Source of the DNA: Schmidtea polychroa
Taxonomy: Eukaryota
NCBI GenBank assembly: GCA_044892525.1
Contig: CM097886.1
Coordinates: 93,186,001 to 93,250,000 of the forward strand
Length of the DNA stretch: 64,000 nucleotides
Direction of reading: 5' to 3'
The position numbers were made by a program, and so were the translations under genes. Numbering within the stretch: the first letter of the stretch is position 1; each line of letters begins with the position of its first letter. The notes under the pieces are model-generated. The model had not been told where the DNA came from and did no database searches. It saw only the letters and a list, made by a program, of their open reading frames with translations. Positions 12,659 to 64,000 of this stretch are shown one piece after another.

Positions 12659-12705
<47 letters not shown>

Positions 12706-12733
12706 TTTATTAATATTAATATTATATTTTGAA

Positions 12734-12783
<50 letters not shown>

Positions 12784-14690: not shown

Positions 14691-14785
14691 ATATAAAATG
14701 TCTTTTTTCTTTTTATGTATATTATGGGTATTATGTGTTTACTAATATTTCTGTAAAATTAACCATTCTCCCTTCCCTACCGAGC

Positions 14786-16435: not shown

Positions 16436-16444
16436 AACGCATCA

Positions 16445-19705: not shown

Positions 19706-19899
19706 TGTTTTTTTTAAGAGATAAGATTTTTAGGACATGTAATAAACGATGAAGGAATACACGCTAATGACAATGAAATTATCGTGATTGAAAATTTCGA
19801 AATCTCAAAATGTTTAAAAAAAAATTATTATAGTTGATTTATAAAGAAAATAATAATATGTATTCAAAACCACTCGTAAAATTGTGCGATATAAATCAA

Positions 19900-19975
19900 A
19901 CAGAAAATATGTGGACCAATGAATGCGAAGAGTCCTTTCAAGAATTAAAGAAAGGATTAATAACAGCTGATAATA
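19900..19975 (+). pseudogene. Tiny Ty3/Gypsy RT-RNase H connection fragment (duplicated at about 61830-61900)
   Basis: Reads MWTNECEESFQELKKGLITA, matching the WxxxCxxAFxxLKxxLxxA motif. Confidence 0.6.
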
Positions 19976-39048: not shown

Positions 39049-39376
39049 TGTCTTCCCCCTAACAAGATTTTAGTCCCGAAAATTAAAGCGGTAAAGATAA
39101 GACAATTNNNNNNNNNNNNNNNNNNNNNNNNNNNNNNNNNNNNNNNNNNNNNNNNNNNNNNNNNNNNNNNNNNNNNNNNNNNNNNNNNNNNNNNNNNNNN
39201 NNNNNNNNNNNNNNNNNNNNNNNNNNNNNNNNNNNNNNNNNNNNNAATTAATCAAATATTGTTCATAAAATTAATGTTTGTCAATTTGAATAACTGGATT
39301 GGATTGAATTGTCGAAGGTGCTTTGATTGAGGACGTATAGCAAATTGCTAGGTCCATTGAACACATAGCCGAATTG

Positions 39377-41539
39377 CTAGTATTTTCTCCTTTTCATGAT
39401 CTTGGCACTTTCGTTACGGATCCTTTGTTCTACTATGTCTGGTCTGTAACTGACCACCAAAGTCTCCCGTGTACTTACCTCTTTGTACACAATTGAGGAG
39501 ATGATGTACGAGCCCTCATTAGCCTCCAATACTCCGTAATCGGGAAAATTGGATACGGCTACTTCATGGATTGGGCCTCCGTCGTATTCCTTGATACGTG
39601 GTTTCCATTTGCTGTCGGGTCTCTGCCACCAACTAGGATCTTCTCTGACGAAATCTTCCCGTATTTTGATTGAGTTGCCCCTTCCGACGAACTCGCCTTC
39701 ATTCACGATAATAGGCTCTCCTGCAATCGTGGGTTCACTCTTTGTTGCCAATATCTTGGTCAATGCAGGATCTGGTGGCTGATAATGGGTTTCTAAGAGA
39801 TCGTCATCCTCATCCTGGATGGGTATCCTAGGCATTTTCTTTTTTGTACTCTTAGGAATCTCATTTTTGCTTTTCGTAGAGGTAGGGACATTTTTCTCCT
39901 TTTCCTCTTTCTGGGTGGGTTTCTCTGTTGTTTTCTTTTTAAATTTTAAATCTTGTAGCTTAAGTAGTGGTGCTACAGCTTGGGGTAATGCTCCTTCTTC
40001 TGCTCCTTGTTTGGGTTCACTCAACGGGGCCAATGCTTTCAAGATCTTGGTGACCCGTTCAACTAGTTAACTGCCGGCGGTGGTTTTTCTGTTTCCATTT
40101 TAGCCGAATTCACCACTCTACTGTCATTGCTAAGGGTGACTTGGAGGCAGTTATCATCCGCGCTCTCGCAAGTGGCATAGTCGTCTTCGTCAGCAATAGA
40201 GATGGCTGGCGGCGACAATGAATCTTCTTCCACTATTTTCAGCAGCTTCGACCTGGGAATATCTTCTTTTACATAGCTCTCCATAGCTAAAGGTTTCTGC
40301 ATGCTTGAGGTTCCGGGATCCATCTGCTTTATTTGTGAAGACACCACCTCTTTCCGGTTGTCTGGTGAAAAAGTCATCTACCCAGATATCTCGTAAATTG
40401 TCGTATATCTCCATAATGGTTGTTACATCATTCTCCGTTTGAAGGTCCGAGAAGTGATATGCCTCTTTACCGGTGACTGCTTTTGCCAAATATGCCAAAC
40501 GGTAATACCCGTTGCATTTCTTTAAGTCCCTACTTTCGAGGCATTTAGCTGCGCCTAACTTACGGATTCCGAGTGCGCGCTGCATTGGGAATCTGATTAC
40601 TTCTAATAGGTCCTTTACTAGCAATCCCACGATGATTTCCCGATCGCAGATTTTCCTAATTCTTTCGGCACAGTCTTCTCCGTCGAACTGTCCGGTTATT
40701 TTTCTCTCGGTCATACCATGCGCATGCGATTGGTAATGTTTGACCTGTGCTCTGGGGGTAACTCTAGTGTTGAGTATCAGATCGCCATTGAAATGTGAGA
40801 TTGAGATGGCCAAAATTGCCGGTTTCAGGAATTGTCGTAGTGTAGCGTAGTGAGCTGCTACGAAAATGGTGAGGTTATCCTCTTGTTTAGGGTCCAAGCC
40901 CTGTCTTACGAAAGACTTAAACGTTTTGATGTCATTATCATTGACATTATATGTCCAATTTGGGTCATTAACCCATCTCGTTTGTGTTTCTCTGTGAGGT
41001 TCCAGAATTTCCATTGCTACGATGGTATCTATTCCTTCACATAACAGTGAGATGTTCTTTTCCCTTCCATCCCCGTTTTCTATTTCGAGGGTTGTGTGCT
41101 TTTGCAGCAAAATAGGGTTTGTGGCACCAGGAACATAAACCGTAAATGGTTTGTTAATGGCGTGTATCCACAGGTGGTTGGTCAGAGTATGTCTGCCAAA
41201 CTCAGGCATGACCTCGGTAAGCCTAATACTGCCGTTATGCTTGCCCTGGATTCTTGAAATAATCATTTGACGCTTTGGGGCCTCGTCAAATTTGAAATTA
41301 TTGGGTATGCCTGAGCAATGTCCGTAAAACCAGTGCCTTTGTCCTTTTCTGCTTTGCTCCATTACCTGCTTCTCCAGGTTTTTATAAATAAGTTTTTCCT
41401 TTAGTAAGTTTGTAGCACGTATAATGCTATGTCTTCCTTGATATTGGGATATTGGATGGCTCTGCATTCCTGAAATAAAAATCATTAACCATAATATCAG
41501 ATATACTGATATGCCATAATAGGCTAAAAAGATATGCAT
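39377..41539 (-). CDS. Accessory ORF of the Gypsy element (pieces 40190-41539, 40063-40377, 39377-40042) with a degenerate REX4/ISG20-like DEDDh exonuclease domain
   Basis: ISISHFNGDLILNTRVTP...VKHYQSHAHGMT...IIVG...YRLAYLAKAVTG...NDVTTIMEIY follows the REX4/ISG20 pattern. The Exo I motif reads FVAAHYAT instead of VAxDCEM. The pieces can be joined by two single-base frameshifts. Confidence 0.6.
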
Positions 41540-41669
41540 GAGTCTTATTATAAAAGATCTACATATGCTGAATTTTAATGCTACCTGGAGCTCTACGTAA
41601 ATATAGATTTTAAGATATATATAAATATTTATATATGATTTTTCCCCCGGGGAAGTCTGTAATTGTCAT

Positions 41670-42570
41670 AATTGCGACATCAGTACTCCATCGTAAGCCC
41701 TTATGGCTTGTCTAAAATATAGCTTGGTCCAAATACCCATAGCTATCAGTGTAGTTATTAGTGATAGTACGGCCGATACCGTAATCCATACCCCTATGGG
41801 TATTTTCAGAATGTATCACAACAGTTTGTCAGGTTTGGGGGCGTTTGGCAAGATATTGGTTTGATAGGTGACAACTGTCTAAGATGTTGCCACATTGCGG
41901 GATGTATCACCATGTTTTCCCTGACTACTTTTGGAGGTGTTTTCGTTATAACTGGCTGTTTCAGAGGTAATATCTCCTCGAATACCTCGAACCACCTATC
42001 GTCCTGCCGTTTCCTCGGACTATAGTATATAACTAGGACCGAATATTCTACGGACTGATTTAGATACATTTCTTGGGAGGGAGAGTTCTGGTCTAACCAT
42101 AATGTGTCTCTCGTGGTTGGTCCGTCTAGAATACAGACTTTCACCTTTTCCTCCCTGGTAATTTGCTGACTAAACTTTACTTTATCCCTTTCGTAGGATA
42201 TCGATATGCGATTTGTGAAATCTGCCGTCCGTAGGATCCAATTTGATACGTGATAGGTATACCAACCACTCTGATATAACCTTGATGCTGCGATATGCAG
42301 TTTATAATCCCTCTCAGCTTTTAAATCATATATAATTCCCACTCTTTTTCTTCTGAATTGAGTTGGCGGATCCGCAAGTACTTGTTGTAGACATGTAAAT
42401 TGAATTTTGTAGCGTTATCGCACGTTGTGAGTATGCTAATTCCGTGATACGTTCTTATAAAATGTAAGTGTTCCACTTGCATAGCCATAGGCTGAAAATA
42501 TGCCTTTTTAACCCTTTTTGCCATTGCCAAAGTTATCATACAGCTTATTATCAACAAAAAGGTTACCGAT
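41670..42570 (-). CDS. Second membrane-protein region fused to the integrase C-terminus (signal-like segment, RRKR, C-terminal TM; two frameshifts)
   Basis: VTFLLIISCMITLAMA is in frame with the integrase tail; then FRRKRVG after a frameshift at about 42345 and IPIGVWITVSAVLSLITTLIAMGIW after a frameshift at about 41815. Confidence 0.55.
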
Positions 42571-45500
42571 TTTGGAACACCCCGTGATCTCAATGGGTAT
42601 CGGTGTTCTTGTGGTTCTTCGGTAGTGTTTGGTTTCACTTGTTTCTCTGGTGCTTTTACTTTTGAATTTCCAGAGGTTCCTTTTGTTGAGATTTCGCACT
42701 TTTTACACCGATTAGCATGCACCATTATTGGTTCTGCTTTTCTGTTGGCCACAAGTTGTAATATGAGATTTGTATCTGTGGTTCTCAGTACCTCATATGG
42801 CCCTTTGAAATTCCGCATGAGTTTTGGTGATAAGCCTTTCTTTTTATAATGACTTTCCAACATCACCTGGTCTCCAACCATTATGCCATGATCCTTGGCT
42901 TTTCGGTCATGATAATCTTTGGATGCCTCCTGATTATATTTTATACTGAGGCCTGCTCTAGCCCATGCTTCCTGCATTCTTTCCCTCATTTCCATTAGAT
43001 AATCTTCCTGATCTAAATACTGTCTTGCTTTAGGGAAAAACAACAGATCTACTGACATTTTACTTTGCCTTAGATACATTAGGTAAAATGGTGTTTCACC
43101 TGTTCCTTCGTGCACTGCATTTCTCTATGCAAATAAACAGGATGGAATGTGGATGTCCCAGTCCGTTTGTCCCGAATTTACATATGATGCTAACATATTA
43201 GCTAAGGTTCCATTAAATCGTTCTACTAGCCCATCCGTCTGTGGGTGATATGGGGAAGTGTTCAACTTTAGAACTCCGAAATAATCATTTATTCCTTTGA
43301 GCAAATTACTCATGAAATCAGCTCCCCGATCCGTTAATAACTTTGTAGGTACTCCATACCTAAAGACAATTTGTTCAACGAAAATTCTAGCTATTGTATC
43401 AGCTTTGTGATTAGGCATCGGGTAGGCTTCTGGCCACTTAGTCAAGTAGTCGCAGAAAACTAATATGTACTTGTTTCCGCTATTAGATTCTTTGAATGGC
43501 CCCAACACGTCCATTGCCGTCATTTCCATAGGTGTAGATGGTACTGGCATCGGCTTCATTGGTACGTGTGGTTTCTTTCCGGTGTTTCTTCTGGTGATAC
43601 AGATCCTACATGTCTGACACCAGGTTTTGACGTCTTGTTTCATGTCGGGCCAAAAGTATTTTTGTTTTAACCTCGACAATGTTTTTCTGGATGACAGGTG
43701 GCTTCCTAAGGCTCCATCGTGATACTGCAACATGAGTGCTTCACGATATTTCTTAGGAACCATTATAACGTTATCTCTTACATCTGAATATTTAAATAAT
43801 CCCTCTTCCAGCACAAATTTGTCTTTATTCTTTTCCCAGTATTTCGTGAATTCTGTGGGCACGTATTTTGCTTCCAAGGCTTGACGGATAATATTGATTT
43901 CTTCGTCAGATTTTTGTGCCTCCATTAAATCAGCTAGCCGGTTGGCTTCTCGAGTCAGTGTGAAGATAGTCCCTTCGAGACGTCCTTCCTTCACATCTTC
44001 TACTTCTTCTTCCTGGTCCATTCTTGATAAAGCATCTGCATTACCATTGTGATATCCTTTTCTGTAATGGATTTCTATGGCATATGGCTGTAAAATTAGT
44101 GCCCATCTGATTAGTTTTGATGTATCCATTGTGTGTTTTGTCAGCCACTGTAATGGTCTATGATCGGTGTACACTATAACCTTTCGACCCCATAGATAGG
44201 TCCTAAACTGGGTTATAGCATAAAAAATTGCTAAAGCTTCTAGTTCTATCACTGCGTAGTTTCTCTCGTGTGGTTTTAACCCTCTGCTAGCGTATGCAAT
44301 TGCATACTCATCTCCTAGGTCATCTCTCTGACCTAGCACAGCACCTATGCCCGAGTGCTGGCGTCTGTCATACCCAAAATTGTCTCTCAAAGTCTGGAAA
44401 TCGCAATATAGGTGGCTTGACGAGATTTCCCTTGAGCATATCAAATGCTTCTTGCTGTTCTGTCCCCCACACAAATTTGACATTTTTGCCCTCTAACTGT
44501 GTAAGTGGAAAAGCTATAACCGAGAAGTTTCTAATGAATTTTCTATAATATCCAACTAGGCCTAAAAACCCTTTGATATGTTTAACGGTTTTAGGCTCTC
44601 TGAAATTCTTTACCTTTTCGACATTAGCTGGATCGGGTTTAACCCCGTCTCGTGATATGATATGTCCAACATATACTACTTCTGGTTCAGCCCATTTACA
44701 TTTGATTGGTTTCGCTTTCATGTTTGCGTTGATCAACCTCTTGAATACATCTTCTAAATGTTCCAAGTGTTTTTCCAAATTTGGCGAGAATACTATGACA
44801 TCGTCAATGTATACCATCGCATGATGTACATCCATGAGCATCAAATTCGTTGCTCTTTGAAATGTGGCTGGAGCTCATGTGAGTCCAAATGGCATTACGT
44901 TATATTCGTAATGACCCATACTCGTAGAGAACGCTGTTATTGGTATAGTCTCATCTTTTAACTTAATTTGATAAAATCATATTTGGACGTCCATTACTGA
45001 GAAGAACTTAGCGTTTCTCATGCGTCCATAGATATAATCTAACAATGGCAATGGATGGCTATCTTTGCATGTTGCTTTGTTAACCATGCGATAGTCGTTA
45101 CATAATCGTATGATCCATCCTTCTTGGCTACCACTATCATTGGCGATTGATATGGTGATTTACTATGCCTGATTATGCCATGTTTTAACATCAATTTCAC
45201 CTGTTTATCTACTGATTCCTCCAGACTGAATGGGATACGGTATGGTCTCAACTTTATAGGTTTTGTATTGGTGAGAACAATCTCATGTGCTAACAGGTTT
45301 GTTTTTCCCAGATCGTATTCATGTTTTGCGAATACCTGATCATTTTTCCTCAATAGTATATTTACTTGGATGTTTTCCTTTCTGGTTAGCATTTTGCTAT
45401 TTGCCGTAGGTGCATCGTAGTACTCAATGTCTGGATCTCTTTCTTCTGCCTTTACGGTGAGTATCGACCCTTCTCCGGTGGCTTGTGGCTCGTTTTGTTT

Positions 45501-46130
45501 CCAGATTCTGCCCACTCTGGTATCTGGATATAAGTAAAATGGTTTAATGTCCAGATTGGCTACCCTGATTGGTATTCTACCATTGACTATTAAACCTACG
45601 CTATGCGTAACTGGTATATTGTATTTCTCCGAAAATCTTTCGTCTGGTTCAAATGCAACTTCACCTTCCCAATTATTGCTTGTAGCTACAAAGCATACCG
45701 TTTCTGCTCTGGGTGGTATGATAGTTGTATGATCTATATAAGCTGTATCATCGTTGTAAATTTTTCTCTTTTTACCTCGTGCTCGGATTAACAATCCAGA
45801 TGCACAATCGAATACTACTCCTCGTAGTCTTTTTAGGATGTCCATACCCAATAGACATTCGGCTGGGAGCATTCTCATCACTATGATGTCGTGATGGAGC
45901 TCCTGGTCACATAGCTTAATCTGTCATGATAATGACCCTATTACGTTTAATGAGGATCCGTTTGCTCCTGTTAATTTTACTCCTGCCGGTTTTAGCGACT
46001 GCAGTTCATGATGGTTTAACAATTTAGCTTCAATTATGGTACCATCTGCTCCTGAGTCTATCACCGCATTAACTGTATGTCGGTTCACTCTTATTTTTAT
46101 CATTGGCTTTTTATCCAAATTCACTGGGTT
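42570..46130 (-). pseudogene. pol: Gypsy pol: protease, RT, RNase H, integrase, disrupted by stops and single-base frameshifts
   Basis: AVIDSGA (46058), MPFGL, VYIDD, TDAS/IAYASR, an H-H-C-C zinc finger, MDVLGP, TDRGADF and DGLVERFN. Confidence 0.95.
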
Positions 46131-49112
46131 ATTGACCATCAAGATAGTATCGTGCGAGATACCGATTGTATTGGCTCTCGTTTGTTCTGCTTCCAGTAAT
46201 TCAGGATCACTCAGTTGAGGATTATACTCTTTAAATTTAGCTTTAATTGACTCTAACGCTTCCTTTGGATAGTGCACTTTAGGTAATTCTGGCAATGTTG
46301 AACATGTTAGATTATTAAATATGGTATCTTCACTGATTTTCCATTGGTGTCGTCCTGTTCTGAATGTTGTTTCCTTTGAATGTTCCCACCCCTCGTTTGG
46401 TGCGGATGGTAAACTCCTCAAAGTTGGCAATTGTACATATCTTGGACTTCTCTTGAATCTGGGTGACCTTATGTCGAATTTTTGGTCGGAACTGTCATAT
46501 TCTCCTTCTGAGGACGGTTTTCTCACGTAGATTTCCTTTGATTGGTCATATGGAGGAAGATATTCCTTAAATCTCGATTTTCTTTGTTGCTGACTCGGTT
46601 TTTTGTTGTAGTTCTGTTTTCGTGATTGATTTGATCTTGAAGATGTTTCACGAGAGCCTCCATTACCTCCTCCCTTTGAATTGTTATCGTCCCGATAACT
46701 CGAATACTCCTCCATTTCTGTTCCAATTACTTCATATTTGACCAAATGTTTCTGTTTAATTTCTTTAATTTCTTTTCTGTGATGTTTGAATAATGCAAAC
46801 TCTGCACACATAGGACATAGTCCTAACAGCAGTTTCCATGACCATCCCCCAATTTTGAATATGCTATATGTTGACATCAATTGCGTAATTATCAGCTTTA
46901 AAATAACAAATATTGCGTAAATTCCTGAACATCCAGCGACGAAAATACCAAAATTGGTAAATCGTCCCCATATTTTCATCATTACGTTCTTTGCTGCTTC
47001 TTTATAGTGTTCCGGTCCAAATAATAAATTGTAGTCTGGTCGTATTAAGCTATCATGATAAATTGTTCTTATAATTTCCGTGATACCTCTGTCTCTGATT
47101 TGTGGGAATAGCAATGTCCTTCTTGCTTCCTCGATATCGTCGGGAGTATAAATCCCTCCTTTTGCTAATTCGTATAGTGACTTGAATTCCAGATTATCCT
47201 TTAATTTAGTTACCTCCAAGGTCTCTACCCGTTGTGTAGATGGTTTTCTTTCCGTCAGAGATATCCACATGTCATTTATTTTGTATAATGGTGATATTGC
47301 CGGGTTGCATATAGCTGGTTGAGGTTTAGCGTTTTCCTCAAGTAACTTTCTGGTTACTGGCATAACAAATCTCAATTTTCCTTGGTAAGACACTGGCAGT
47401 TCTAGAGTGCATTGATTAAATCTGGCTAATTGTTCTTCCACTGGTTTACACTCATAGCTATATATAGCTTCTCCCATGATTCTGCCAAACATTCCATCTT
47501 CCAATAACATTGGAGTAACCAACTCTGGATTAACGATAGATATTGCTAATCTATTTCGGACTATTTCACGATTTAGCTTGCAATCGTTTAGTATTACCTC
47601 TTGATACATATCTTGCACTTGTCCTTGCAGATCATGATATAAATAATCTACTTTATTATTTATATAATTCGTGATTTTGATATCCTTTACATGTAGGACC
47701 TTGGAATTCCGAATATATTCTCTTGACAAGAAAATTCCTTTGTAGTTCGTTTCGTATACTCTTTTCCCACATTTAGTCTGTTTATCTTTTCGGACAAATC
47801 GAATTGCTTCCGTCTTGTCTTCCGATATCAACACTAGAGGTGTGTTTTCCTCTCCGATATCTTCCTTCTCTTGTTTGTTGATTTTCTTCAACGTTTTTGC
47901 TTTATCCCAAACCTTTTCTGGATTCTGGGAGTCCCGATATTTAGTTCCATTTAATTTTCTAAAAGGAATTTTCTTGAGGAAAGCCAACTCACAATGATCT
48001 CTCATTTGTTCGTAAATTAATGTGGTGGTTCCCGTTTTACAACTGCCGAACTTGGCATTGCATTGCGGATGTGCCATCAATTTTCCTGTGGCCACATCGA
48101 ATGTTCCCTCGTACTCTCGTAATTCCACTGAGTAATCTTCTATGTCTACCACATAGGAAACTAAATTGCTACCGCGAATTTTCTTTCTGCCTTTGCAGGT
48201 TCCATCTGAGGCAATTGTTCCTCCTCGAGTGATTGTTATTCCCAGTGTTTTCCCAATTTCTGCCGAGATTGATACCTCGTTATCTATCCTCACGCTTCCT
48301 TTTCGAAATGCATCTAGGCAGTCTTCGGGCATTATGTTTACCGGTCTTGGTATTAATGTTACAGATAGAAAAGCAGAATAGTGATTACTACCGCAATAAT
48401 ATTCAAATGTAGCTCTCTGGATTCTACATTCCTTTATCGTGGTTCTATAAAATTCACTCTCTTGGTAGACGTAATATTCTACCTTTTCCCCTTGATGAAC
48501 CTTCTCTGGATACGCCTCTTTGCACTCAATTACATCTACTAGCGAATATATCCGAGATAGTTTAGGATTTCCACAGTCAAATACTGTTAGTGAATTTGTT
48601 TGTTTTAATATGCCCATCATTACCAGGAACATCAGGATCATGCTTGTCATGTTTCCTGTGCCTGAACTACCATTATTTATGGCTTCTTCCACGACTTCAT
48701 ATCGTGGTTTTGGAATTATTTCCTTTTCCCAAAATTTGTTTACGGTCATCCATACCTCCAGGTTATAATCTACCATTTCGACTATTTGATCGATTTCTCG
48801 TTCTATAAGCCTTTTATCCTCCCCTACTCGGGCTAAGGCATTTTGAATTAACAATGATAGTGATGTTACCACTTTCCCTCTTGTTAATCCTTGCTGCACG
48901 AATGCTTTTATGGCATCCTGAATATCTCCTGTTGATACATCTTTGGGTACTCTTTCCATTGTCTTCTTGACCTCTTTTATTATCTTCTTTACTTCGATGC
49001 CCTTGATTTTTTGAATTCTCCATTCGGGCCTGATGATCCCGATTATTTGTTGTATTCGTTTCCACAATAACAACCTTTCTGGCGTTGTCTCATCTCCCGC
49101 CTGGTTGTCCAT
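45924..49112 (-). CDS. env: Chuvirus/Jingchuvirales-type envelope glycoprotein in one uninterrupted frame with the retroviral aspartic protease
   Basis: Internal signal-like MILMFLVMMGIL (about 48650-48590), then LTVFDC...SLVDVIEC...CRIQRATFEYYCGSNHYS, a Cys-rich ectodomain, TM FGIFVAGCSGIYAIFVILKLII (about 46955-46875), a cytoplasmic linker and DSGA. Confidence 0.82.
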   Translation of the reverse strand: MDNQAGDETTPERLLLWKRIQQIIGIIRPEWRIQKIKGIEVKKIIKEVKKTMERVPKDVSTGDIQDAIKAFVQQGLTRGKVVTSLSLLIQNALARVGEDKRLIEREIDQIVEMVDYNLEVWMTVNKFWEKEIIPKPRYEVVEEAINNGSSGTGNMTSMILMFLVMMGILKQTNSLTVFDCGNPKLSRIYSLVDVIECKEAYPEKVHQGEKVEYYVYQESEFYRTTIKECRIQRATFEYYCGSNHYSAFLSVTLIPRPVNIMPEDCLDAFRKGSVRIDNEVSISAEIGKTLGITITRGGTIASDGTCKGRKKIRGSNLVSYVVDIEDYSVELREYEGTFDVATGKLMAHPQCNAKFGSCKTGTTTLIYEQMRDHCELAFLKKIPFRKLNGTKYRDSQNPEKVWDKAKTLKKINKQEKEDIGEENTPLVLISEDKTEAIRFVRKDKQTKCGKRVYETNYKGIFLSREYIRNSKVLHVKDIKITNYINNKVDYLYHDLQGQVQDMYQEVILNDCKLNREIVRNRLAISIVNPELVTPMLLEDGMFGRIMGEAIYSYECKPVEEQLARFNQCTLELPVSYQGKLRFVMPVTRKLLEENAKPQPAICNPAISPLYKINDMWISLTERKPSTQRVETLEVTKLKDNLEFKSLYELAKGGIYTPDDIEEARRTLLFPQIRDRGITEIIRTIYHDSLIRPDYNLLFGPEHYKEAAKNVMMKIWGRFTNFGIFVAGCSGIYAIFVILKLIITQLMSTYSIFKIGGWSWKLLLGLCPMCAEFALFKHHRKEIKEIKQKHLVKYEVIGTEMEEYSSYRDDNNSKGGGNGGSRETSSRSNQSRKQNYNKKPSQQQRKSRFKEYLPPYDQSKEIYVRKPSSEGEYDSSDQKFDIRSPRFKRSPRYVQLPTLRSLPSAPNEGWEHSKETTFRTGRHQWKISEDTIFNNLTCSTLPELPKVHYPKEALESIKAKFKEYNPQLSDPELLEAEQTRANTIGISHDTILMVNNPVNLDKKPMIKIRVNRHTVNAVIDSGADGTIIEAKLLNHHELQSLKPAGVKLTGANGSSLNVIGSLS

Positions 49113-51351
49113 TTCTTGGGCTATCCCTGCTAATGTTTTTTAGCTGAATTTTCCGAATCGTTTCCGGATTTAATTGCTCCTTAGGTGGAGGTTTCATTTG
49201 ATCCTTTCTAGGACGTCCTCGTCCATCTTTTTTCACTTTCTCCGGGGGTTTTTCAGTCTCTGGATTTGTTATAGCTTGAGACGTAGTGGCTCCTACGTTT
49301 GTTTCTCCTGGATTTAATCTGACGTACTCTGAGAAGTAATCTTGCTCGTCAATGTCCACCATTTGACAGGGACTAATTTCCTCTAGCCTTATTTTCTCGA
49401 TCTCTTCCGCAATTTCATTTGCTATATCTGGCAGTCTCATTAATGACCACTGGGACTCAGGTGGAGTTACTGGGATGATCATTACCGTGGTTGTTGCCAA
49501 TGGTAGACAACCCACATCCACTAGATATTCATCGTCATCCACTTGCCTACCATGGACCATTATCAGGAATATACCTGTAGATTGATCGGTGGCAATCACA
49601 TCTCTCCTCAATATTTTAACCTTGATATAACAATTATAAATCATTGTTAATGGTTCTTTCCCCATCATTCTCACGTCTAGATTAATGTTGCCTTGTCTAT
49701 CAGGCTGACTTCGGATAGCTTTCCCATTTTTCCTCATCAGTGCCTCGATCTGCGTCTGGAATAGGCTTGTTTCCTTTACCACTGGTAGTATAAGCGGAAT
49801 GATTGCTTCCAACAAATCTACTGGCATTCGTAATACTAACATCCAGTCTAGTATTTCTTTTATAGTTTCTCCATCTCGTGGAGATTTCTGCAATTCCAAC
49901 CCTAGTCGCTTGGTTAATTGTTGAGTTTCCTCCAATCTCTCTATTTCCATCTGAGTAATCAAGAATACGCTATCTTGATCCATTACTGCTACTGGCTTCT
50001 GAGCTCTCTTTGCTGTGAGCTTCGTCACTCTACCTGGAAGTATCCCGTTCTGTAGAAGTGTTTGGTTTGCCTCTAATTTTATTCCGCATAAGTATAAGTC
50101 ATATCCTTGATGCTTAATACTTGTCAATGTTTCCGCTAATTTATCGGCTCGACTTCTTACGTTTATATCGAGATTATACTCTTTATCCTGTGGGAGTTTT
50201 ATATTGAGTTGGGCATCTTGGAGATCCTATTCATGTTCCATGAGTTTTCCTAATTTCCTTAGGATTTTGTACGTGTCGTTATGATACTTTGGATCATCTT
50301 CGACCTGCGATATCAGTTTTACTACTGTATCGATTTCGTGAATTTTAATTTCTGTTTCTCCCAATTTTCCCAATTGTCTGGCCAGCTTCTGCTGGTACTC
50401 ATATCTGGAATCCACCAGTTTTAAACATTTTGTTAGGGTATCTGACCCTTCTTTTACCTTTGCTTTCCCTGGCAAGGTTCTATCGAACTCGCTTAGTATG
50501 GTGGCCATACTAGGTTCATCATCGGAACTCTCCTCTGATTCCGTTTCCTGAAGGTCCTCTCTAACGGAGTCCTTTTTTCTGAGAAATTCATCTCTTCCAA
50601 CTACCATAAAGATGGTACCTTCTTGGTCGGTCAATCTAGCCAACCTATTCTTTTCCTCCTGGATTTCCATTTCCAGTTGTTGCAGATACGTTAAGCCTTG
50701 ATCCTGGTTAACCATAAAGGTCGTCTTAGACTTGTTCACATTACCCTTATCGGTATTTTTATTGAACTGCCTCGTGTTTCCACTCTGGTTCTGAGGACAT
50801 GACCTCATCATATGTCCAAATTTCCCACATCCGTGACATTTTATCTTTCCTGATGAATTTACATCATCTCTTTTGATTGTACTAAAATTATTGCTGTTCT
50901 GAGGACTTCTAGTTTTTCAGACCGCAGCAACATGTCCCTTACGTTTACATTTTTCGCATTGCAAATTCTGTACTCTACAGTTTTCCGCATCGTGGTTATT
51001 CCGTCCACATTTGGTACATTGTATACCTTTGCGATTGTCCATAATTTTCCTGCTGGTACAATCTTTCGCTATATGTCCTTTTCTATGGCAAATGAAACAC
51101 TCTACCGGTGTTCTCTCACTGTTTACCAGGAACATGGTTGACTTTTCCAAGCTGCTTTCAATTACGACAGCTTTCCGTGTCAATTCATCAAAATCGTCAC
51201 TAGTATGTAATATTAGAGCGTTCCTCATTGTAGGAGTTAGTCCTGCCCATAGCTGATCTTTAACTAACAATTCTGTTGGCTTTGCCCATGTGGTTTTTGG
51301 TCCAAATGCTCTTTCGGCAATTAATGATAGCTGGTGTGCAAATTCCCCCAC
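49090..51351 (-). CDS. gag: Gag C-terminal region and extension: four CCHC knuckles, ubiquitin-like domain (about 50005-50208), AT-hook (about 49201-49235); one frame with two in-frame stops
   Basis: CFICHRKGHIAKDC, CTKCGRNNHDAENC, CEKCKRKGHVAAV*, CHGCGKFGHMMRSC and KKDGRGRPRK. ORFs 50917-51351, 50227-50811 and 49090-50127 share a frame. Confidence 0.85.
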
Positions 51352-51411
51352 ATGTTCATTAGCATTCTGTTTTCGATGATAAAATTGTTGTCTAAATATT
51401 CTTGTTGTCTA

Positions 51412-51829
51412 AATTTTCGATCGATGTGAAATTCTAATGTCTATTGTTAAATCTCCAATTAGATAGGAGATGTAAAATTGCAAAATTAGTTTCGTTAAAT
51501 GTCAAATGACACAAATTTGTTTCTAATCAAATCGATTGCTTCTTTAACTACTACGTCTCAAATGTTTCTTTCGGTTCTACGTGTCTTAACTTTCTCTCCC
51601 CTCAATCTAATTTTTCAACTAGTATTTATATAAATTTATTTATTTTAAATCTATTAATAGTAATTATTTAATTACTATTTTTATTATATATTTTTAAACA
51701 ATTACTATTTTTGTTACCAATCTATTTTTAGTAATTATTTATTACTATTTATATTTTAATTCCAATTTTAGTAATTAATTATTATTTAATTTCAAAACTT
51801 TTGATTCCGGTTCCTACTGAACCCCAACA
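51412..51829 (-). repeat. Truncated 5' LTR (418 bp); the rest of the LTR, the PBS and the gag N-terminus are deleted
   Basis: Identity to the 3' LTR stops at 51412 and is followed almost directly by mid-gag sequence. Confidence 0.88.
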
Positions 51830-54865: not shown

Positions 54866-56615
54866 AAGTGAACGCTCTATATAAGCAACCTCTTTTTAAG
54901 CAACACTTTTTATAAGCAACCTCTATACAAGCAACTTTTTTGAGTTTAACTGAACTGTATAAGCAATTAATTGTAAAATCAGCTGTTCACGACAAATTAA
55001 TTTGAAATTTTAAAAAGTTCTGTTATTGTAATATGTTTGTTTTTTGTGCTGCCAGTATTGAAGAATAGTTAAGTGCATTCTGTTATTTCTGTTAATTAAT
55101 AAATAATTATATTTTTGTTTTCAATTCAGCCATAAAATATGAATCAGAAGAAAAAAGACGTTCTATTGCGTTAAAAGATAAACTATCCATTTTAGAGAAC
55201 ATTGAAATGGTAAAAAATCAAAGTTGCTAAATCTACAATAAGTAGAGTAAAAAAAATAAAGAAAATTTAGAAGAATATGCATCCAAAACCTATGTGAATC
55301 AGAATAAGATTAAGCGAATAAAGACAATAAAATATAGCGAAATCGATGATACAGTGTTTTCTCGGTTCTTGGAGTGACGAAAATAAAACGTTTTAGTTCC
55401 AAATGGAATTATTAAATTAAAGGCAGCTGAAGTTAATAGATTGAATAATGGTCCTGAAACATTTGTAGCAAGTGATGGATGATTAACGAAATTTAAAAAA
55501 CACCATGGTATACGGATTTTGTCTGTTTGTGGAGAGAGTATGTCTTGCAATGTGGAGCTAGCAAATTCGTTCAAAATTTCAAAATTATATTGATAAAAAT
55601 GGCTTTTTGCCTGAACAAATATATAATTGCGATGAAATATATAATTACACAACAAAACTAATATTTCAAATTTTGAAAAATCTCCTGCTGGGAGAAAACA
55701 ATGAAGGAACGAGTAACAATTATGCTATGCGTAAACACTAGAAATACGCATAAATTAGATTTGATGATGATAAGGAAATCGAAATATCCTCATTGCTTCA
55801 AAAATATGGAGTTGCCAATATATTAAAAATCATCTAAAAATGCTTGGCAAACTTAAACACTTTTTAGCGGCTGGTATAATGAAATATTTATATCTTCAGT
55901 AACTCGACACTTGGAATCTAAAAGCCTTCCAGCAAAGGCTCTTCTCTAAGTAGATAATGCAATTTGTCATGGGTTAGAGCATAATTTTAATAGTAACTCG
56001 AATTTCAAAGTTATGTTTTATCCCCCAAATAACACACCATTATTGCAACCATTGGATCAAAATGTGATAAAATCACAAAAACAACGCTATCGGAAACATT
56101 TACTTGCATGTCTTGAAGCCTTAGGTGCAGAAGGTTGAATAGTTTCAGCACTTAAAAATATAAATTTGAAAGATGTTGTTTATTTATTGGTGCAGGCATG
56201 GAATGATATTCCCGTGTCAGTATTACAAAAGTCATTTAAATATCTTTTTCCGTCAAGTGATGAAATTCCATACAACATTCATTCTGATCACTTTTCAGAA
56301 GAAGACGATATTCTCTAGCAAAATTTTATAATTCGATATTTAATGATTGTAATTTGGCAGATACTGAAATTTTGGATTGGGCAAGTGGAACAAGCGAGGA
56401 ATATCATTTATTTGACCTTAAAGAAAATCCAGAATTAGAACATGAAACTGTTTCTGTTGATAGGGTTGCCAGATTTTCAACAAGACAAACCGGGACAATC
56501 CCGGAAAACAGGGACGTCTGGCAACCCTAGTAACTATATAAAAAATTAAAATAATAAACCAAGCATAAATATAAAAATCAATAAACTCACATTTTTTAAA
56601 TAATTAAATAGCTTT
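54866..56615 (+). mobile_element. pogo/Tigger-like DNA transposon remnant (transposase pseudogene about 55140-56330; right end lost)
   Basis: CENP-B-type HTH motifs (KKRRSIALKDKLSIL; FVASDG*LTKFKKHHGI), EQIYNCDE, KERVTIMLCVN, DNAICH and LQPLDQNVIK. Left terminus aagtgaacgctctatataagcaac follows a TA. Confidence 0.85.
56461..56529. mobile_element. 69-bp hAT-type mini element
   Basis: tagggttgccaga...tctggcaacccta terminal inverted repeats with internal ccgggac motifs. No 8-bp TSD. Confidence 0.6.
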
Positions 56616-57414
56616 ACAGACGCGAGCAATGTCATTTTTGTGTTGGGTTGTTAGTTTATCTCGCGTCTGTGTGCGCTTTCTTTTCTTTGTTTTTGGCTTG
56701 TGTGCGCACACAGACGCGAGCAAGAAGTATGGCAATTTTATTAAGTAGTTTTGTAATTTTTTTTGATTTAGAAGTTAATTAGATTTTTGAATGTGAATGG
56801 ATTTAGAGAGTTGTTAATGGTATCGATTTCGGTTTTTTGGAGTTTATGATTTTTCGGATAAAAGATGGCTGCTTTTAATGTAGAAATTTATGAATCTGAT
56901 AACTCCATACTACCAACGAAACTGATGGTTCATTTTTTATGATCCCAAGAGATCCTGATAACTTTAATGGTGTTTTTGGCCAACTAATATTAAATTTATT
57001 TGGTGGATGGATTTCCGTTGGTATTCGATGCAATAATTGTGATGTAGTAGCTACACAAAGAAAGGTTCCAGATAAAATGATTGAGAAGAGTTCAGCTACA
57101 AGATTGTTTAATATTACTGAAAGTACTGGAGTTGTTATGACTGCTATGATCCCTGATTATCGATCTCAAGTATGTCGTGCACAAATGGAAGCAGCTCGAT
57201 TTAGATATAAACATGGATATGAAATGCCTTGTGACATAATATGTCGTTCTATTGCGGATATTAAGCAGCTTTCTACCCAATCAACTGAGACGCGACCATT
57301 AGGTTGTTCAATGATGGCATTATCTTATGGTATTGAAATGGACAAATTGTTATTATTCAAAACCGGCTCTGTGGATGAAAATAAAATTATTATTCGTTAT
57401 CTTGAATTTAAACA
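56616..57414 (+). repeat. 5' LTR of copy B (first 67 bp missing), containing the PSMA6-like ORF 56939-57520
   Basis: About nine substitutions relative to the 3' LTR. The ORF reads through the LTR end into the PBS. Confidence 0.88.
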
Positions 57415-57432
57415 TGGTAGCAGAGCGTGGTT
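57415..57432 (+). promoter_or_regulatory. Primer-binding site complementary to animal-type initiator tRNA-Met
   Basis: TGGTAGCAGAGCGTGGTT immediately after the LTR's terminal CA, complementary to CCA plus the AGCAGAG-type acceptor stem. Confidence 0.88.
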
Positions 57433-57560
57433 CCGGCTAGCCAGCCGGAACAAGGTAATTAATGATTATAAAATGTCTTTTTTGTGTTTATGTATATTAT
57501 GGGTATTATGTGTTTACTAATATTTCTGTAAAATTAACCATTCTCCCTTCCCTACCGAGC

Positions 57561-59342
57561 ATGGGAGGGTGCTGCTATGGGCCCCAGCACTCTTTTAAAG
57601 GGGGAAGCCAGGGGAACAGGATAAAGAACAGAGCTAAGTCAAGGGTGAGGGCGAGCGAGGTAATGGGTTTTGAATTGCGATGGGAAAGTATAAATCAAAT
57701 ATTTGTCAAAACTCTTACTGGTAAGACAATTACTCTTGACGTTGAATTGAATGGCACGATTGAAAAGGTAAAAGGAAAAATTCAGGACAAAGAAGGAATT
57801 CCGTTAAATTATCAAAGGTTAGTCTACGCAGGGAAGCAATTAGAAAATAAAAGAATGTTGAATGATTATAGCATACAAGTAGGTTCGACACTTCATTTGT
57901 CACTCAGGCTGTGCGGTGGCAATGACGAAGAGATTTTAGAAGAAGAATTGTGGAAAAAGAGAATGAAAAAAAGAAAATTAACGAGATTTAGAAACAAGAT
58001 TCTGAATGATATAAAGGGTAAGGATGTTAGCAAATGGTTGGAGGAATATGAAGATCAAAAGGAGAGTCTAGATGAAGAATTAAGAGATCTAAGAACGATC
58101 AGTGAAAAATTGCAAAGATTGGACATCAATGCAATCTTAGATAAAGACCTGGAGGAGATCGAGGAAAAACATCAAATAATTGGGGCATTGATGGAAAGAA
58201 AAGCAAATCAATCTTTTATGGAAAAGAAGGAAAAGGTGAATGATGATACCATCAAGAAGAATAATGCAGTGCATAAAAGAAAACTGGAAAGTCTACAGAA
58301 AATTACAATACCTGTCTTTGAAGGCAAGATGAAAGAGTACGAACCATGGCAAGCAGCTTTTACGGCGTGTGTTGACGAAGCGGAAGGTGATGAGGTTGAA
58401 AAGATGTTTCACCTGCACAAGTACCTTCACGGAGAGCCATTAAAGTTAATTGAAAATCTAGGATATTCGACAGAGGCTTATCAAATGGCAAAAGAGAAGT
58501 TGGATAGGCGATATGGTGGGGATGAAAGGATATATTTATCAATGTTAGAGGAGATGGAACAGTTCAGGCCAATTCGAGAAGGAGATTTGAAGGATCTAGA
58601 CTTATTTGTTGGATTATTAGAAGCAGTCACCGTGCGATTTAAATCCATTGGGAAAGATTCCGAGTTAAATACTGGATATCTTTTTCAAAAGTGTTTGGGC
58701 AAGTTAACAACGGATCTTGTGTATAAATGGAAGAAAGAGAAAATAGAAAAGGAATTGCGGGAGACGATAGAGAATTTGAGAAGATGGATACAACAAGAAG
58801 CGGAGATCCTAAGGTCCACTAACGAGGTCGTGTATGGGACTCAACCATGCACCAGGGCTTATGATGGGTCAAGAGTAGAAGGTGTGTCTGTAGAAAGAGA
58901 AAGCTTCAATCCAGGAGGTTGGACGCATTTTACGGGGCAACCAGATGGCAAAGTTAAAAGTGGAACGGTTATACAGGTGAATAACTCTAACGGCTATAGA
59001 TCAGAGTGTGTACAATGTGGTGGTCAACATTACCTAGACCAATGTGACAAGTTTAAGCAACTCACAACATTAAGTGAAAACTGGTCACTAAATGAAATGC
59101 AACAGGGAAAAGGGTGGAATATTGAATTGGCGAAAAAGGGAGAAAGAATAATGGAGAGATTACACCTAAACAAACTGAACAGAGACAGGTGCTTGGCCGA
59201 GTATAGCGATGGTGGGTGGAGAATCCACAATGATGTTTCAAAAAAGGTGCGTGGTGCGGCGGCTTATATAATACAAAGATGGGTTTGTGAGGGTTATTGG
59301 AGATTGAGCCAAAATGCAGAAAATGGAGGGGCGAAGGGATAA
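57561..59342 (+). CDS. gag: Ubiquitin-Gag fusion, copy B (ubiquitin 57693-57920), knuckles deleted and fused in frame to the pol remnant
   Basis: Near-identical to 14786-16292. An 845-bp deletion at 59067/59068 relative to copy A. Confidence 0.88.
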
Positions 59343-59495
59343 AATGGCGAGGGAAGTGCAAGAAATGAAGGGGAAAAGGGATAAACTGACACGGGAATGT
59401 ATCTTCAAATTATGTTGGAGTATAAAAGAAGAAGGAGAAGCTGATGGGGATTTGAGATTGACACTAAGGTGTCAAGGGGGGGGGGGGGGGGAAGA

Positions 59496-60361
59496 TGGTA
59501 AATTATGAGCTCAATACGCGTCTGTGTGCGCGTTGTATTGTGTGATGGGTTTGTGTGCGCACACAGACGCGAGCAATGTCATTTTTGTGTTGCGTTGTTA
59601 GTTTATCTCGCGTCTGTGTGCGCTTTCTTTTCTTTGTTTTTGGCTTGTGTGCGCACACAGACGCGAGCAAGAAGTATGGCAATTTTATTAAGTAGTTTTG
59701 TAATTTTTTTTGATTTAGAAGTTAATTAGATTTTTGAATGTGAATGGATTTAGAGAGTTGTTAATGGTATCGATTTCGGTTTTTTGGAGTTTATGATTTT
59801 TCGGATAAAAGATGGCTGCTTTTAATGTAGAAATTTATGAATCTGATAACTCCATACTACCAACGAAACTGATGGTTCATTTTTTATGATCCCAAGAGAT
59901 CCTGATAACTTTAATGGTGTTTTTGGCCAACTAATATTAAATTTATTTGGTGGATGGATTTCCGTTGGTATTCGATGCAATAATTGTGATGTAGTAGCTA
60001 CACAAAGAAAGGTTCCAGATAAAATGATTGAGAAGAGTACAGCTACAAGATTGTTTAATATTACTGAAAGTACTGGAGGTGTTATGACTGGTATGATCCC
60101 TAATTATCGATCTCAAGTATGTCGTGCACAAATGGAAGCAGCTCGATTTAGATATAAACATGGATATGAAATGCCTTGTGACATAATATGTCGTTCTATT
60201 GCGGATACTAAGCAGCTTTCTACCCAATCAACTGAGACGCAACCATTAGGTTGTTCAATGATGGCATTATCTTATGGTATTGAAATGGACAAATTGTTAT
60301 TATTCAAAACCGGCTCTATGGATGAAAATAAAATTATTATTCGTGATCTTGAATTTAAACA
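59496..60361 (+). repeat. 3' LTR of copy B (866 bp) with the PSMA6-like ORF 59886-60368
   Basis: TG...CA. A 13-bp deletion relative to the copy A LTR separates the MAAF leader from the PSMA6 frame. Confidence 0.88.
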
Positions 60362-63300
60362 ATTATAGCAATCCAATAATTGTTTAAACAATTTAATGCT
60401 AAAATTTAATATCAACAAAAAATATCAAAAATTAATTTCCACAGATAAAATTTTCAGTTTTAATATTTTAACATTTCAAATTCTTGCTACAGTAGCATGG
60501 CCCAACATAACTGCTTGTTACGCACTTGTATTCTAGTGATCATGGTTGTTATTCGGTGTTTTATTGATTGCAGCTTCCAAATCTCGGATCATCTTCGATT
60601 ATTGTAGCAATAAGTGCGGAGGAAAGTAAAATCACTACGAAAGAGTGCTTCAACAGTCCTAATGTCAATTCCTGGATTTCATATCTCAAATCGAATACAG
60701 CAGAATATTGAAATAAATGAAAAGAAGTAAAAAATATTATTTGACGAAGACAGAGAAATGAATATAATTTACAAATCTATTTTTACATTTATTACCAACG
60801 CTAAAATACATATAACGATAGAAACATGTACAAATACGATACATAAATAATTCTAAAACTAAAAGTCATTCAATCGTAATTTATTACGAAGCTTAATAAT
60901 CCAAATAATCATTAAACAAATACACAACATAGTTGGGATTAGAATAAGCAATATTTGATACAAACTTATTTGCGGTTTTCCCAAATCTAAAACAGATATA
61001 AGTAAACATGATGGTAAAAAACAAAGATAATGAAGAACTATAATATAATACAAAATTTCGTTACTAATTATAAATTATTAAAAACTCTCAAAAAGAACTT
61101 TATCGAAATTTGTTTTTATCACAAGGGAATTATAATAGAAAAATATAATTAATTAAAAAATATAATTAATAATATAATTAAGGTAAATCCAGAGGGCTTT
61201 AACAAAGATGTTATTTTGAATATGTTTTAATTATTGGTATTGAATTTCACCAATAATAAAATTCTATCAAGAAAAGAAAGACAATGCGCATAAAGTAGAT
61301 ATTACTAAAATATTTGTAGGATGCCTGTAAATAATACCTATTCGAAATTATATAATATTTATGCATGTTGAATTTGTATAATTAATCTTATTAAAAAGAT
61401 TGAAAATTTTGAAATCTCAAAATGTGTTAAAAAATTACGAATTATTTTGAATATTTTTTAATTATCGGTATTGAAGTTCACGAATAAAGATACTCATAAT
61501 AAAATTCTATCAAGAAAAGAAAGACAAAGATAAAGCGTAAATAATTAATATTGCTAAAATATTTGTAGGATGCCTGTAAATAATACCTATTCGAAATTAT
61601 ATAATATTTATGCATGTTGAATTTGTATAATTGTTTTTTTTAAGAGATAAGATTTTTAGGACATGTAATAAACGATGAAGGAATACACGCTAATGACAAT
61701 GAAATTATCGTGATTGAAAATTTCGAAATCTCAAAATGTTTAAAAAAAAATTATTATAGTTGATTTATAAAGAAAATAATAATATGTATTCAAAACCACT
61801 CGTAAAATTGTGCGATATAAATCAAACAGAAAATATGTGGACCAATGAATGCGAAGAGTCCTTTCAAGAATTAAAGAAAGGATTAATAACAGCTGATAAT
61901 AAATTCTATATCTGCTTTTAATTGTAATCAACAGTTTTAATTTAAATTGTATAAATAAATAAGAAATGCCAAAAATAGAATTCAATTTTATTTAAAATAT
62001 GCATATAATCAATTATTGAAATAAGAATTGACTTAATTACAGATTTAATATTCGAAATCTAAATAAATCTGGATTCTCGCCAATACTGCTTGTTGAGAGA
62101 AAGGAAATATTTCTTTCAATTCGTTCATTGAATTTAATTGATCAATTCATAATTTAATTGTAAATATTGAAGAAAAAACGATATAGAATAATTCAACAAA
62201 AAACAATAATTCGAATAGACAAAAGCAAAAATTGGAAAATTAGTTTTATGATTACCAATTATACCCACATTTCAGCATGATACAGAAAGAAACTGATATA
62301 GCGTTTTTATCTTTAGGCGAATGAGGTCATTTAATAGTTTGATGCATAAGTTCCGAAATCCTCATTTAAAATTCATATTTAATTAAAACTCTTTTCCTAT
62401 ATATGATGTATTTACAATTTAATTATTAAATTAATATTTATTATTTGGAAAGTTAGGGACACTAAACAAATATCTCTCGCGCAGAATTTCTTTTAGTTGA
62501 TTTCAATTAAAATTTTTCCAATAAAATAAAATAATCATTAAATAGAATTAATTTAAAAAATAAGGTTTTCCTTCAAAAACAAGAAGAAAAGAATTAATAT
62601 TTTGAAGTGTCACAAAATTTATTATTATTGTTATTGATATAATTATTNNNNNNNNNNNNNNNNNNNNNNNNNNNNNNNNNNNNNNNNNNNNNNNNNNNNN
62701 NNNNNNNNNNNNNNNNNNNNNNNNNNNNNNNNNNNNNNNNNNNNNNNNNNNNNNNNNNNNNNNNNNNNNNNNNNNNNNNNNNNNNNNNNNNNNNNNNNNN
62801 NNNNNNNNNNNNNNNNNNNNNNNNNNNNNNNNNNNNNNNNNNNNNNNNNNNNNNNNNNNNNNNNNNNNNNNTATAGTGATGATTAAATTTAAACAATTAA
62901 ATGATAATTTAAGCCTTTTGTTGCGATTAATATATTTAATATAAATGAATAAATTGTCGACTATTAGATAGGCTTTGACAATCGAAAATTTTTTCATTTG
63001 TATTAAATATTGATATAATAATTGTCAGAAATATTTTGGTTAATATCAATATTATTATTATTATTATTATTATTGATAAAATTACTATTAATTTTAGGCG
63101 AATACTTTTTGTGATCTAAAAAAACCAATTTTCTGACGATTAGCTAAACCGTAATTTCAAATTCATCAAAACTCATATAACCCGATTTTTGGATTTTATT
63201 TTTTTCAATCACTTATACGAGGGGTGGGGAACCTGCGGCCTGCCGGAGCTTCATGTGTGGCCTCCGGAGCCTTATCGAAATCAATCTTAATTTATATAAA

Positions 63301-64000
63301 AAACCATGAATTTTGAGGATTTACAAATAAAAATACTCGTAACTACTGAACTGTATATATACCGAACTGTACAAAGAAGAAAATATAAAAGTCAATCATT
63401 CACATCCATAAATACAAAATGTATGTAGACGAATAAAAAAGATTATTGAGCCCTTATTTGTGAAATGATGACTTATTTGCATCATTTTTTCCATTCAGAA
63501 ATAATAAACATTTTCAAGAATATTTCGTACAGCCGCATTTTTCAAATCTGGAGACTGATTATAAATATTGTTTTAATTAATAACTGTATATAAACAAAAG
63601 ATTTAAAATGAAATTAATTAATGTTAAAATACTTTTTGACTGCGGCCCCATTTGGAGGCGACAAATTTCAATGTGGCCTTAGAAATATAAGAAATATAAA
63701 AGTTCCCCAACTTCGGACTGTATTCACAGCACAATCGGTAATAATTTTATTGCTATTTCTATTTTTATAGGTAATATTTATGCATGTGTAATCCAATTTA
63801 ATTTTCATTAAAATTATTTACTAGATTCGTTCTTCCTCATATTTATTAACTAAACTTTTAGTATTTTATAATTATCATTTTATCTAATGTAGGTCCTAAA
63901 CTTCATAGGTTTACTTAGTTTGTATTTTTAAATATATAGCGGTGGGACTACCGTGAATTGACTTATTTTCCTGCAGGCTACTTTGCGATGTTTTCTCGCT

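Follow-up and report, generated by a model that had tools for sequence, protein, structure and literature searches.

The products of UBA52, RPS27A, and the polyubiquitin genes are ubiquitin fusions that host deubiquitinases cleave after Gly76. In the genomes of cytopathic pestiviruses, host ubiquitin has been inserted by recombination, and its Gly-Gly end is the cleavage site for host enzymes; RNA viruses take up ubiquitin sporadically, and engineered ubiquitin-Gag fusions affect budding. Long terminal repeat (LTR) retrotransposons such as Bs1 of maize capture fragments of host genes, retroviruses transduce host mRNA, and the LTR of mouse mammary tumour virus encodes the sag open reading frame (ORF). 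Here we analyzed a 3.75-kb LTR element of Schmidtea polychroa at positions 56616-60361 of a 64-kb window (the whole stretch of 64,000 nucleotides that was analyzed, GenBank GCA_044892525.1, contig CM097886.1; all coordinates are positions in this window). The element has one long ORF, in which a ubiquitin domain precedes Gag, and a fragment of the proteasome gene PSMA6 in each of its LTRs.

This element, which we call copy B to tell it from a second copy (A) in the same window, is probably a non-autonomous, gag-only BEL/Pao element with an inherited ubiquitin-Gag fusion that is likely to be cleaved by deubiquitinases, and with fragments of host mRNA carried as passengers. It shares with BEL/Pao elements (Belpaoviridae) LTRs ending in ACA, a primer-binding site (PBS) of the tRNA type, a purine tract, a DUF1759 Gag, and CCHC knuckles, but differs from them in having no protease, reverse transcriptase (RT), RNase H, or integrase, in the ubiquitin before Gag, and in the proteasome fragment in the LTR. 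Near-complete cis signals and a missing pol region are shared with non-autonomous LTR elements, both gag-only and similar to large retrotransposon derivatives (LARD) or terminal-repeat retrotransposons in miniature (TRIM); however, LARD and TRIM have no long Gag ORF, whereas copy B keeps one, lacks a target-site duplication (TSD), and probably misses the start of its 5' LTR. The full 76-residue fold, the residues L71, R72, L73, G75, and G76, and a partner directly after ubiquitin are common to this element and to polyubiquitin, UBA52, and RPS27A. Unlike in these natural fusions, a leader of 11-45 residues precedes ubiquitin here, about 27% of its residues are non-canonical, and cleavage is presumed. 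The pestivirus insertions are sporadic and recent and belong to an RNA virus, whereas here the fusion with a retrotransposon Gag is kept across highly diverged relatives. As in capture of the Bs1 type, host coding fragments lie in sense and collinear inside the element, and several unrelated fragments occur in its relatives; the differences are that the fragment lies in the LTR itself, twice per element, and that a sister variant has a mosaic ORF of PSMA6 and SNF8. With sag, the element shares an ORF with its own ATG in the LTR, which in this case is a truncated host gene, mostly broken and with no sign of selection. No description of a ubiquitin-Gag fusion in BEL/Pao or other LTR elements was found in the literature searched, which was incomplete and did not cover Repbase.

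The features of copy B are as follows.

56616-57414, plus strand: 5' LTR, a direct repeat of 59563-60361, probably without about 67 nucleotides (nt) at its 5' end
57002-57364, plus strand: PSMA6 segment in the 5' LTR, residues 35-154 of about 246, sense and collinear (Pfam Proteasome, E 6e-23)
57415-57432, plus strand: PBS of the initiator-tRNA-Met type, 18 nt, adjoining the 5' LTR
57561-59342, plus strand: ubiquitin-Gag ORF, counted from the Met of MGGCC and open from 57462
57693-57920, plus strand: ubiquitin domain, 76 codons with a Gly-Gly end (Pfam E 7e-23)
58317-58739, plus strand: DUF1759 core, a capsid-like domain of BEL/Pao Gag (Pfam E 2e-11)
59474-59495, plus strand: polypurine tract, 22 purines, mostly G, read from the sequence
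59496-59562, plus strand: interval of 67 nt from the purine tract to the start of LTR identity, with one more partial unit of about 92 nt
59563-60361, plus strand: 3' LTR, the part in common with the 5' LTR (repeat comparison)
59949-60311, plus strand: PSMA6 segment in the 3' LTR (Pfam, tblastn)

The two LTRs are direct repeats with 9 mismatches (98.9% identity), and the insertion is thus young. A preliminary description made from the same DNA had reported LTRs, a PBS for initiator tRNA-Met, and a polypurine tract, and all three were recovered where it had placed them (799-nt repeats, an 18-nt site, and a 22-nt tract). The PBS 18-mer occurs once in the window, and a match was obtained in 1 of 100 shuffles. 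It agrees with the primer at the 3' end of human initiator tRNA-Met at 16 of 18 bases (bioRxiv 10.1101/2021.12.17.473132), a human sequence that may differ from the host tRNA, and on this match the assignment of the PBS to initiator tRNA-Met is reasonable. The purine tract does not abut the start of the shared LTR sequence: LTR identity begins only 67 nt downstream of it. This gap is compatible with a 5' LTR truncated at its 5' end, from which the initial 67 nt are probably missing, and 59496-59562 probably represents the beginning of the 3' LTR. The LTRs end in ACA, and the 5' start of identity is not TG. No TSD was found at copy B, where the five flanking bases differ between the two sides. 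The G+C content of the element is 34-40% against a window background of about 22-28%, and the element has a strong purine skew on the plus strand.

The loss of RT and integrase that had been reported earlier was confirmed, since tblastn searches of the whole window with ten BEL/Pao polyproteins matched Gag only, with protease, RT, and integrase absent; Pfam had no match in the ORFs downstream of gag. Because the Pao-type protease, RT, RNase H, and integrase are all missing, copy B is a non-autonomous derivative, and its enzymes would be supplied by an autonomous relative located outside the window. By its DUF1759 Gag, the element is assigned to BEL/Pao.

Tandem units of about 92 nt make up the 5' part of the LTR (56662-56723, 59517-59576, and 59609-59670; also 17583-17736). 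A 15-nt palindromic pair with the potential to form a hairpin bounds each unit, and the 3' LTR region has one partial unit more than the 5' LTR. At 60354-60388, a near-perfect palindrome with arms of about 13 nt is formed by the final 13 nt of the 3' LTR plus flank and a sequence that follows after 9 nt; it may be a chance effect of the AT-rich DNA or a property of the target site.

The ubiquitin-Gag ORF begins with a 45-residue leader, followed by ubiquitin, a helical region, the DUF1759 capsid core, and a zinc-knuckle region. The Pfam match to ubiquitin spans positions 1-71 of the 72 in the profile, and a search of solved structures agrees with it. The domain is identical to canonical ubiquitin at 55 of 75 residues and different at 20; K6, K11, K27, K29, K33, K48, L8, H68, L71, R72, L73, G75, and G76 are retained, and the substitutions include I44V, K63V, V70S, and R74C. 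In an AF2 model, the ubiquitin fold has a predicted local distance difference test (pLDDT) score of about 83-86, whereas the leader and the Gly-Gly linker stay below 50, as for a flexible junction. The leader is predicted to be disordered, and the part after ubiquitin is modelled as three long helices followed by a helical capsid-like domain. A fold search with the Gag model ranked the PNMA2, copia, and dARC1 capsids first, at E values of 0.4-4 that are not significant. Myristoylation of the leader was considered and rejected: it starts with Met-Gly, but the usual downstream consensus is unmet, and the leader is not common to the relatives.

A search with the Gag part alone against 1.84 billion representative proteins gave 9172 matches (E <= 0.001), and ubiquitin-bearing relatives were counted among the best 150 of them. 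The Gag is collinear with polyproteins that bear Peptidase_A17, RVT_1, rve, and DUF5641. Within these best 150, the closest matches, P0135 (46% identity) and P0134 (35%), have ubiquitin directly before Gag, and P0174, P0224, and P0248 also have it immediately N-terminal of Gag. These five relatives come from four different public assemblies, and their identity to the window in Gag is 26-45%. In P0134, the same ORF runs through zinc knuckles, a protease-like region, and the beginning of RT to the end of its 2.6-kb contig; because the fusion is present in this pol-bearing protein, it was not captured by the RT-less unit. Ubiquitin would thus be no recent capture but an inherited trait of a Gag lineage, some members of which also have protease and RT. 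The PBS 18-mer is found upstream of the fusion in identical form in contig L005 and over its first 12 nt in contig L003. The first 240 nt of L003 have a G+C content of 57% against 35% in the rest; this contig is possibly chimeric, and its sequence upstream of the PBS is unreliable. A protein word search with the whole ubiquitin-Gag ORF was swamped by polyubiquitins and one with Gag only gave nothing at E 1e-20, and no relatives were found in the scanned metagenome contigs or prokaryotic genome contigs; a scan of viral contigs, with ubiquitin in the query, gave giant-virus ubiquitin genes only.

In all seven ubiquitin-Gag proteins the junction is alike, with ubiquitin residue 76 followed by N, G, or S, an acidic stretch, and the helical N-terminus of Gag, and Gly-Gly is retained in six of the seven. 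Between relatives, ubiquitin has dN of 0.25-0.56 with saturated dS, and in most pairs it is at least as conserved as the Gag core (34-67% vs 21-51%). Co-translational cleavage is the fate of ubiquitin fusions whose Gly-Gly is intact, and uncleavable ones are degraded, so that the retention of Gly-Gly argues for cleavage. By analogy with the natural fusions, host deubiquitinases would cleave after Gly-Gly and free Gag from the leader-ubiquitin part. The deubiquitinase-dependent maturation of Gag suggested earlier for this locus fits the recurrent fusion and the Gly-Gly kept at an identical junction, whereas we infer the cleavage itself. Alternatively, ubiquitin that stays uncleaved may be recognized by the budding or sorting machinery. 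In a narrower form of the proteostasis idea discussed below, to which we give slightly less than an even chance, only the ubiquitin-Gag module is adaptive, and the element belongs to a retrotransposon lineage with a stably inherited fusion to host ubiquitin. If the module is conserved and selected, this lineage has made long use of host ubiquitin, which may serve either as an N-terminal tag that removes itself or as a point of attachment for host machinery.

The second copy in the window gives the following features.

14692-18440, plus strand: copy A, about 99% identical to copy B, with the identity extending into the flank
14786-16435, plus strand: ubiquitin-Gag ORF of copy A, 549 codons from MGGCC, with ubiquitin at 14918-15145
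17878-18447, plus strand: LTR ORF of copy A, 189 codons from its own ATG, with the PSMA6-like segment at 18028-18390
60362-64000, no strand assigned: shared 3' flank, about 99% identical to 18441-23677 (window self-comparison)

In the self-comparison, 14692-23677 matches 57467-64000 at about 99% identity. Since this similarity continues beyond the element, copies A and B are one insertion that was segmentally duplicated (or is present as unresolved haplotypes). Copy A has no 5' LTR or PBS; its 3' LTR lies at 17629-18440, and its Gag region is longer and has more zinc knuckles. The Gag of copy B is open but has one internal deletion relative to copy A, which takes most of the zinc-knuckle part. 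The two Gag sequences differ by 9 nonsynonymous and 2 synonymous changes (dN/dS of about 1.1), a ratio that we read as neutral decay after the duplication event. Compared with the LTR of copy A, the two LTRs of copy B have in common one stop and one length difference that shifts the frame, both located upstream of the PSMA6-like part. These states are common to the two B LTRs but are not found in the orthologous 3' LTR of copy A, which suggests gene conversion between LTRs or with another copy of the family. Eight of the nine differences between the LTRs of copy B lie in the PSMA6-like half.

The best solved-structure matches of the LTR fragment are PSMA6 (E 2e-35), with residues 35-143 aligned without gaps. 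In tblastn searches with three bona fide PSMA6 proteins, the homology was bounded at residues 35-154, and no other part of PSMA6 was found in any frame. The piece is about half of the fold (positions 4-121 of the 189 in profile PF00227), and the Proteasome_A_N domain (PF10584), present in 12 of 12 bona fide PSMA6 matches, had no match in the LTR fragment. Owing to its place inside the LTR, each element has two copies of the fragment.

A word search with the LTR ORF retrieved P0133 and later P0285, which are encoded on short contigs from two other samples (L001 and L006, respectively). Both contigs are 92% identical to the window LTR over 240 nt of the PSMA6 part and unrelated to it upstream, and PSMA6 was seen only in this close LTR family. 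In L001 (257-763) and L006 (170-697), a fragment of SNF8, a component of ESCRT-II, lies in frame upstream of the PSMA6 piece and forms a mosaic ORF with it (residues about 114-195 of 258; Pfam E 2e-9, PDB E 7e-12). The LTR of L006 is internally deleted. Similarity between the flank that follows it and that of the window was only apparent and was rejected, being no better than chance (222 of 500 shuffles reach the score). With a flank unlike that of the window, L006 suggests that PSMA6-bearing LTRs exist at other loci; a full second element at another locus was not found. As to independent insertions bounded by TSDs, the window copies are one duplicated insertion with no TSD, whereas the LTR of L006 lies in a different flank.

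Purifying selection on the PSMA6 piece is not borne out by the comparison of the window LTR with L001, in which 13 codons differ nonsynonymously and 4 synonymously. When the 5' LTR is compared with each 3' LTR of the window, 4-5 codons differ, every one of them nonsynonymously; the recent changes thus look neutral-like, on small numbers. The LTR ORF is uninterrupted from its own ATG in one of five LTR copies (that of copy A), broken in both LTRs of copy B and in L001, and internally deleted in L006, whereas the PSMA6-like part is without stops or gaps in all three window LTRs. Judged from its sequence, the piece has no plausible role as a proteasome subunit. It would stem from an abundant host mRNA that was built into the LTR, most likely by template switching during reverse transcription, and would since have been carried as LTR sequence, a passenger drifting neutrally.

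Other host fragments occur in the relatives. P0174 (L003, 280-1857) has an HSP90 fragment between the PBS and ubiquitin, P0166 has a CFAP58 coiled coil and CCCH fingers, and P0199 has a CCDC149 fragment. These three proteins suggest that the Gag lineage often picks up pieces of host mRNA. The source genes of the host fragments, including SNF8, are six different ones, some of them unrelated to proteolysis. The presence of SNF8, HSP90, CFAP58, and CCDC149 pieces in relatives weakens the coincidence of two captures from one pathway, and promiscuous capture of host mRNA explains the fragments more simply than a designed cargo. The mosaics of PSMA6 and SNF8 in LTRs, together with the fragments in relatives, are further animal examples of host mRNA capture by LTR elements. 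They also carry a warning for annotators, who may take pieces of this kind for "proteasome subunit-like" or "polyubiquitin-like" genes.

Several observations weigh against the interpretation of an inherited fusion with passenger fragments. The divergences of ubiquitin and of Gag are poorly correlated, and the dN/dS of ubiquitin is confounded if it was captured more than once from different hosts. In a neighbour-joining tree of the Gag core, the six ubiquitin-bearing sequences fall in a split of 18 of the 129 tips with weak bootstrap support. No ATG was found between the last upstream stop and ubiquitin in L002 (1-120) or L005 (264-383), where translation may depend on a non-AUG start or splicing, or the copies may be defective. 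An autonomous partner of the same family was not found, and there is none in the window. Over the stretch concerned, real PSMA6 proteins are mutually 61-97% identical (median 79%), but their identity to the LTR fragment is only 51-58%. The fragment nevertheless keeps 109 residues without a gap and free of stops in three LTRs, which hints at a past constraint on its frame, unless the host PSMA6 is itself divergent. Neither the PSMA6 nor the ubiquitin capture is datable without the host's own genes.

Some of these observations bear on the alternative that separate BEL/Pao Gag lineages captured ubiquitin repeatedly, or refreshed it from host polyubiquitin mRNA. Under this alternative, Gag and ubiquitin need not diverge in step, and the values for P0135 (Gag core 51%, ubiquitin 47%) and P0248 (Gag core 32%, ubiquitin 62%) are in line with that, as are the ubiquitins of two relatives that are nearer the canonical sequence (56-60 of 75 residues), the leaders before ubiquitin that cannot be aligned, and the lack of a clean ubiquitin clade in the Gag tree. 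However, the downstream junction is identical in plan in seven of seven proteins, the closest relatives of the window Gag among the best 150 of the 9172 matches bear ubiquitin, and the ubiquitin-bearing proteins are concentrated in one region of the tree. We therefore regard repeated capture as unlikely.

The preliminary description had correctly placed ubiquitin on Gag and PSMA6 in the LTR (Pfam E 7e-23 and E 6e-23) and had read them as a two-part cargo from one pathway. In its broadest form, this idea would make the element a proteostasis-directed parasite that retains ubiquitin, PSMA6, SNF8, and HSP90 for their effects on host turnover or budding, with the ubiquitin-Gag fusion matured by deubiquitinases and the LTR ORF giving a decoy peptide, which we consider very unlikely. 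The original form, in which a parasitic or domesticated unit directs both cargos jointly at host proteolysis, ubiquitin maturing Gag and the PSMA6 fragment disturbing the proteasome, is highly improbable. Both ubiquitin and PSMA6 are indeed present and in sense, the PSMA6-like part, which sits on a long branch without indels, has neither stops nor gaps in the three window LTRs, and SNF8 and HSP90 in relatives could be read as a proteostasis theme. Nevertheless, age and occurrence set the two parts apart: the ubiquitin-Gag fusion is an old trait of the wider lineage, found in relatives only 26-45% identical in Gag, whereas PSMA6 was seen only in a close family of LTRs that are 92% identical. 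Interference with the proteasome is not supported either, with half a fold, no alpha-subunit N-terminal motif (PF10584), neutral-like recent changes, and an ORF that is interrupted in both B LTRs and L001 and internally deleted in L006. CFAP58 and CCDC149 in relatives are unrelated to such a theme, and all the sources are plausibly abundant mRNAs. That both cargos remain open holds for the Gag ORF and for the stop-free PSMA6 part, but Gag has its internal deletion and the LTR ORF is interrupted upstream. As the two-part system is unsupported, the finding is less striking than first thought.

Domestication, in which the locus would be no transposon copy but a host gene for a co-opted ubiquitin-Gag protein, is extremely unlikely. 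The long ORF, open despite AT-rich DNA, and an architecture kept in distant relatives would fit domestication. The element, however, still has its LTRs, PBS, and purine tract; its LTR identity marks a young insertion; the copies differ at 9 nonsynonymous and 2 synonymous positions and by a large internal length difference in Gag; the relatives include polyproteins with protease and RT; and the rest of the window is littered with remnants of transposons. That the junctions of PSMA6 with the LTR or of ubiquitin with Gag are chimeric joins of the assembly is barely conceivable, given that, although the window has many blocks of about 99% identity and several N runs and the first 240 nt of L003 are GC-rich and possibly chimeric, the PSMA6 junctions recur in three window LTRs and in two contigs of other datasets (92% identity) and the ubiquitin-Gag junction recurs in five independent proteins from four datasets.

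No tRNA genes or Rfam families were found in the window, and nine of its ORFs had no exact match among recorded sequences. Blocks of about 99% identity, several of them inverted, pair 715-2343 with 12163-13794, 5034-7149 with 26165-28279, and 25383-26166 with 32471-33254, and N runs lie at 20722-20849 and 62648-62871, which are corresponding positions in the two halves of the large duplication. Such blocks may reflect recent segmental duplication or unresolved haplotypes. On the minus strand, 38631-51829 is a 13-kb Ty3/gypsy-like LTR element whose 418-nt LTRs are 99.5% identical. Its RNase H and integrase lie in 43125-44483, and its ORF at 45924-49112 (1062 codons) has a fusion glycoprotein (PF24664, E 8e-85) N-terminal of an aspartyl protease, a placement that is unusual for an env-like gene. 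This neighbour was considered as the autonomous partner of copy B and rejected because it is of the Ty3/gypsy type. Directly upstream of copy B, 56001-56135 is a remnant of a pogo/Tigger-type DDE_1 transposase (Pfam E 2e-6).

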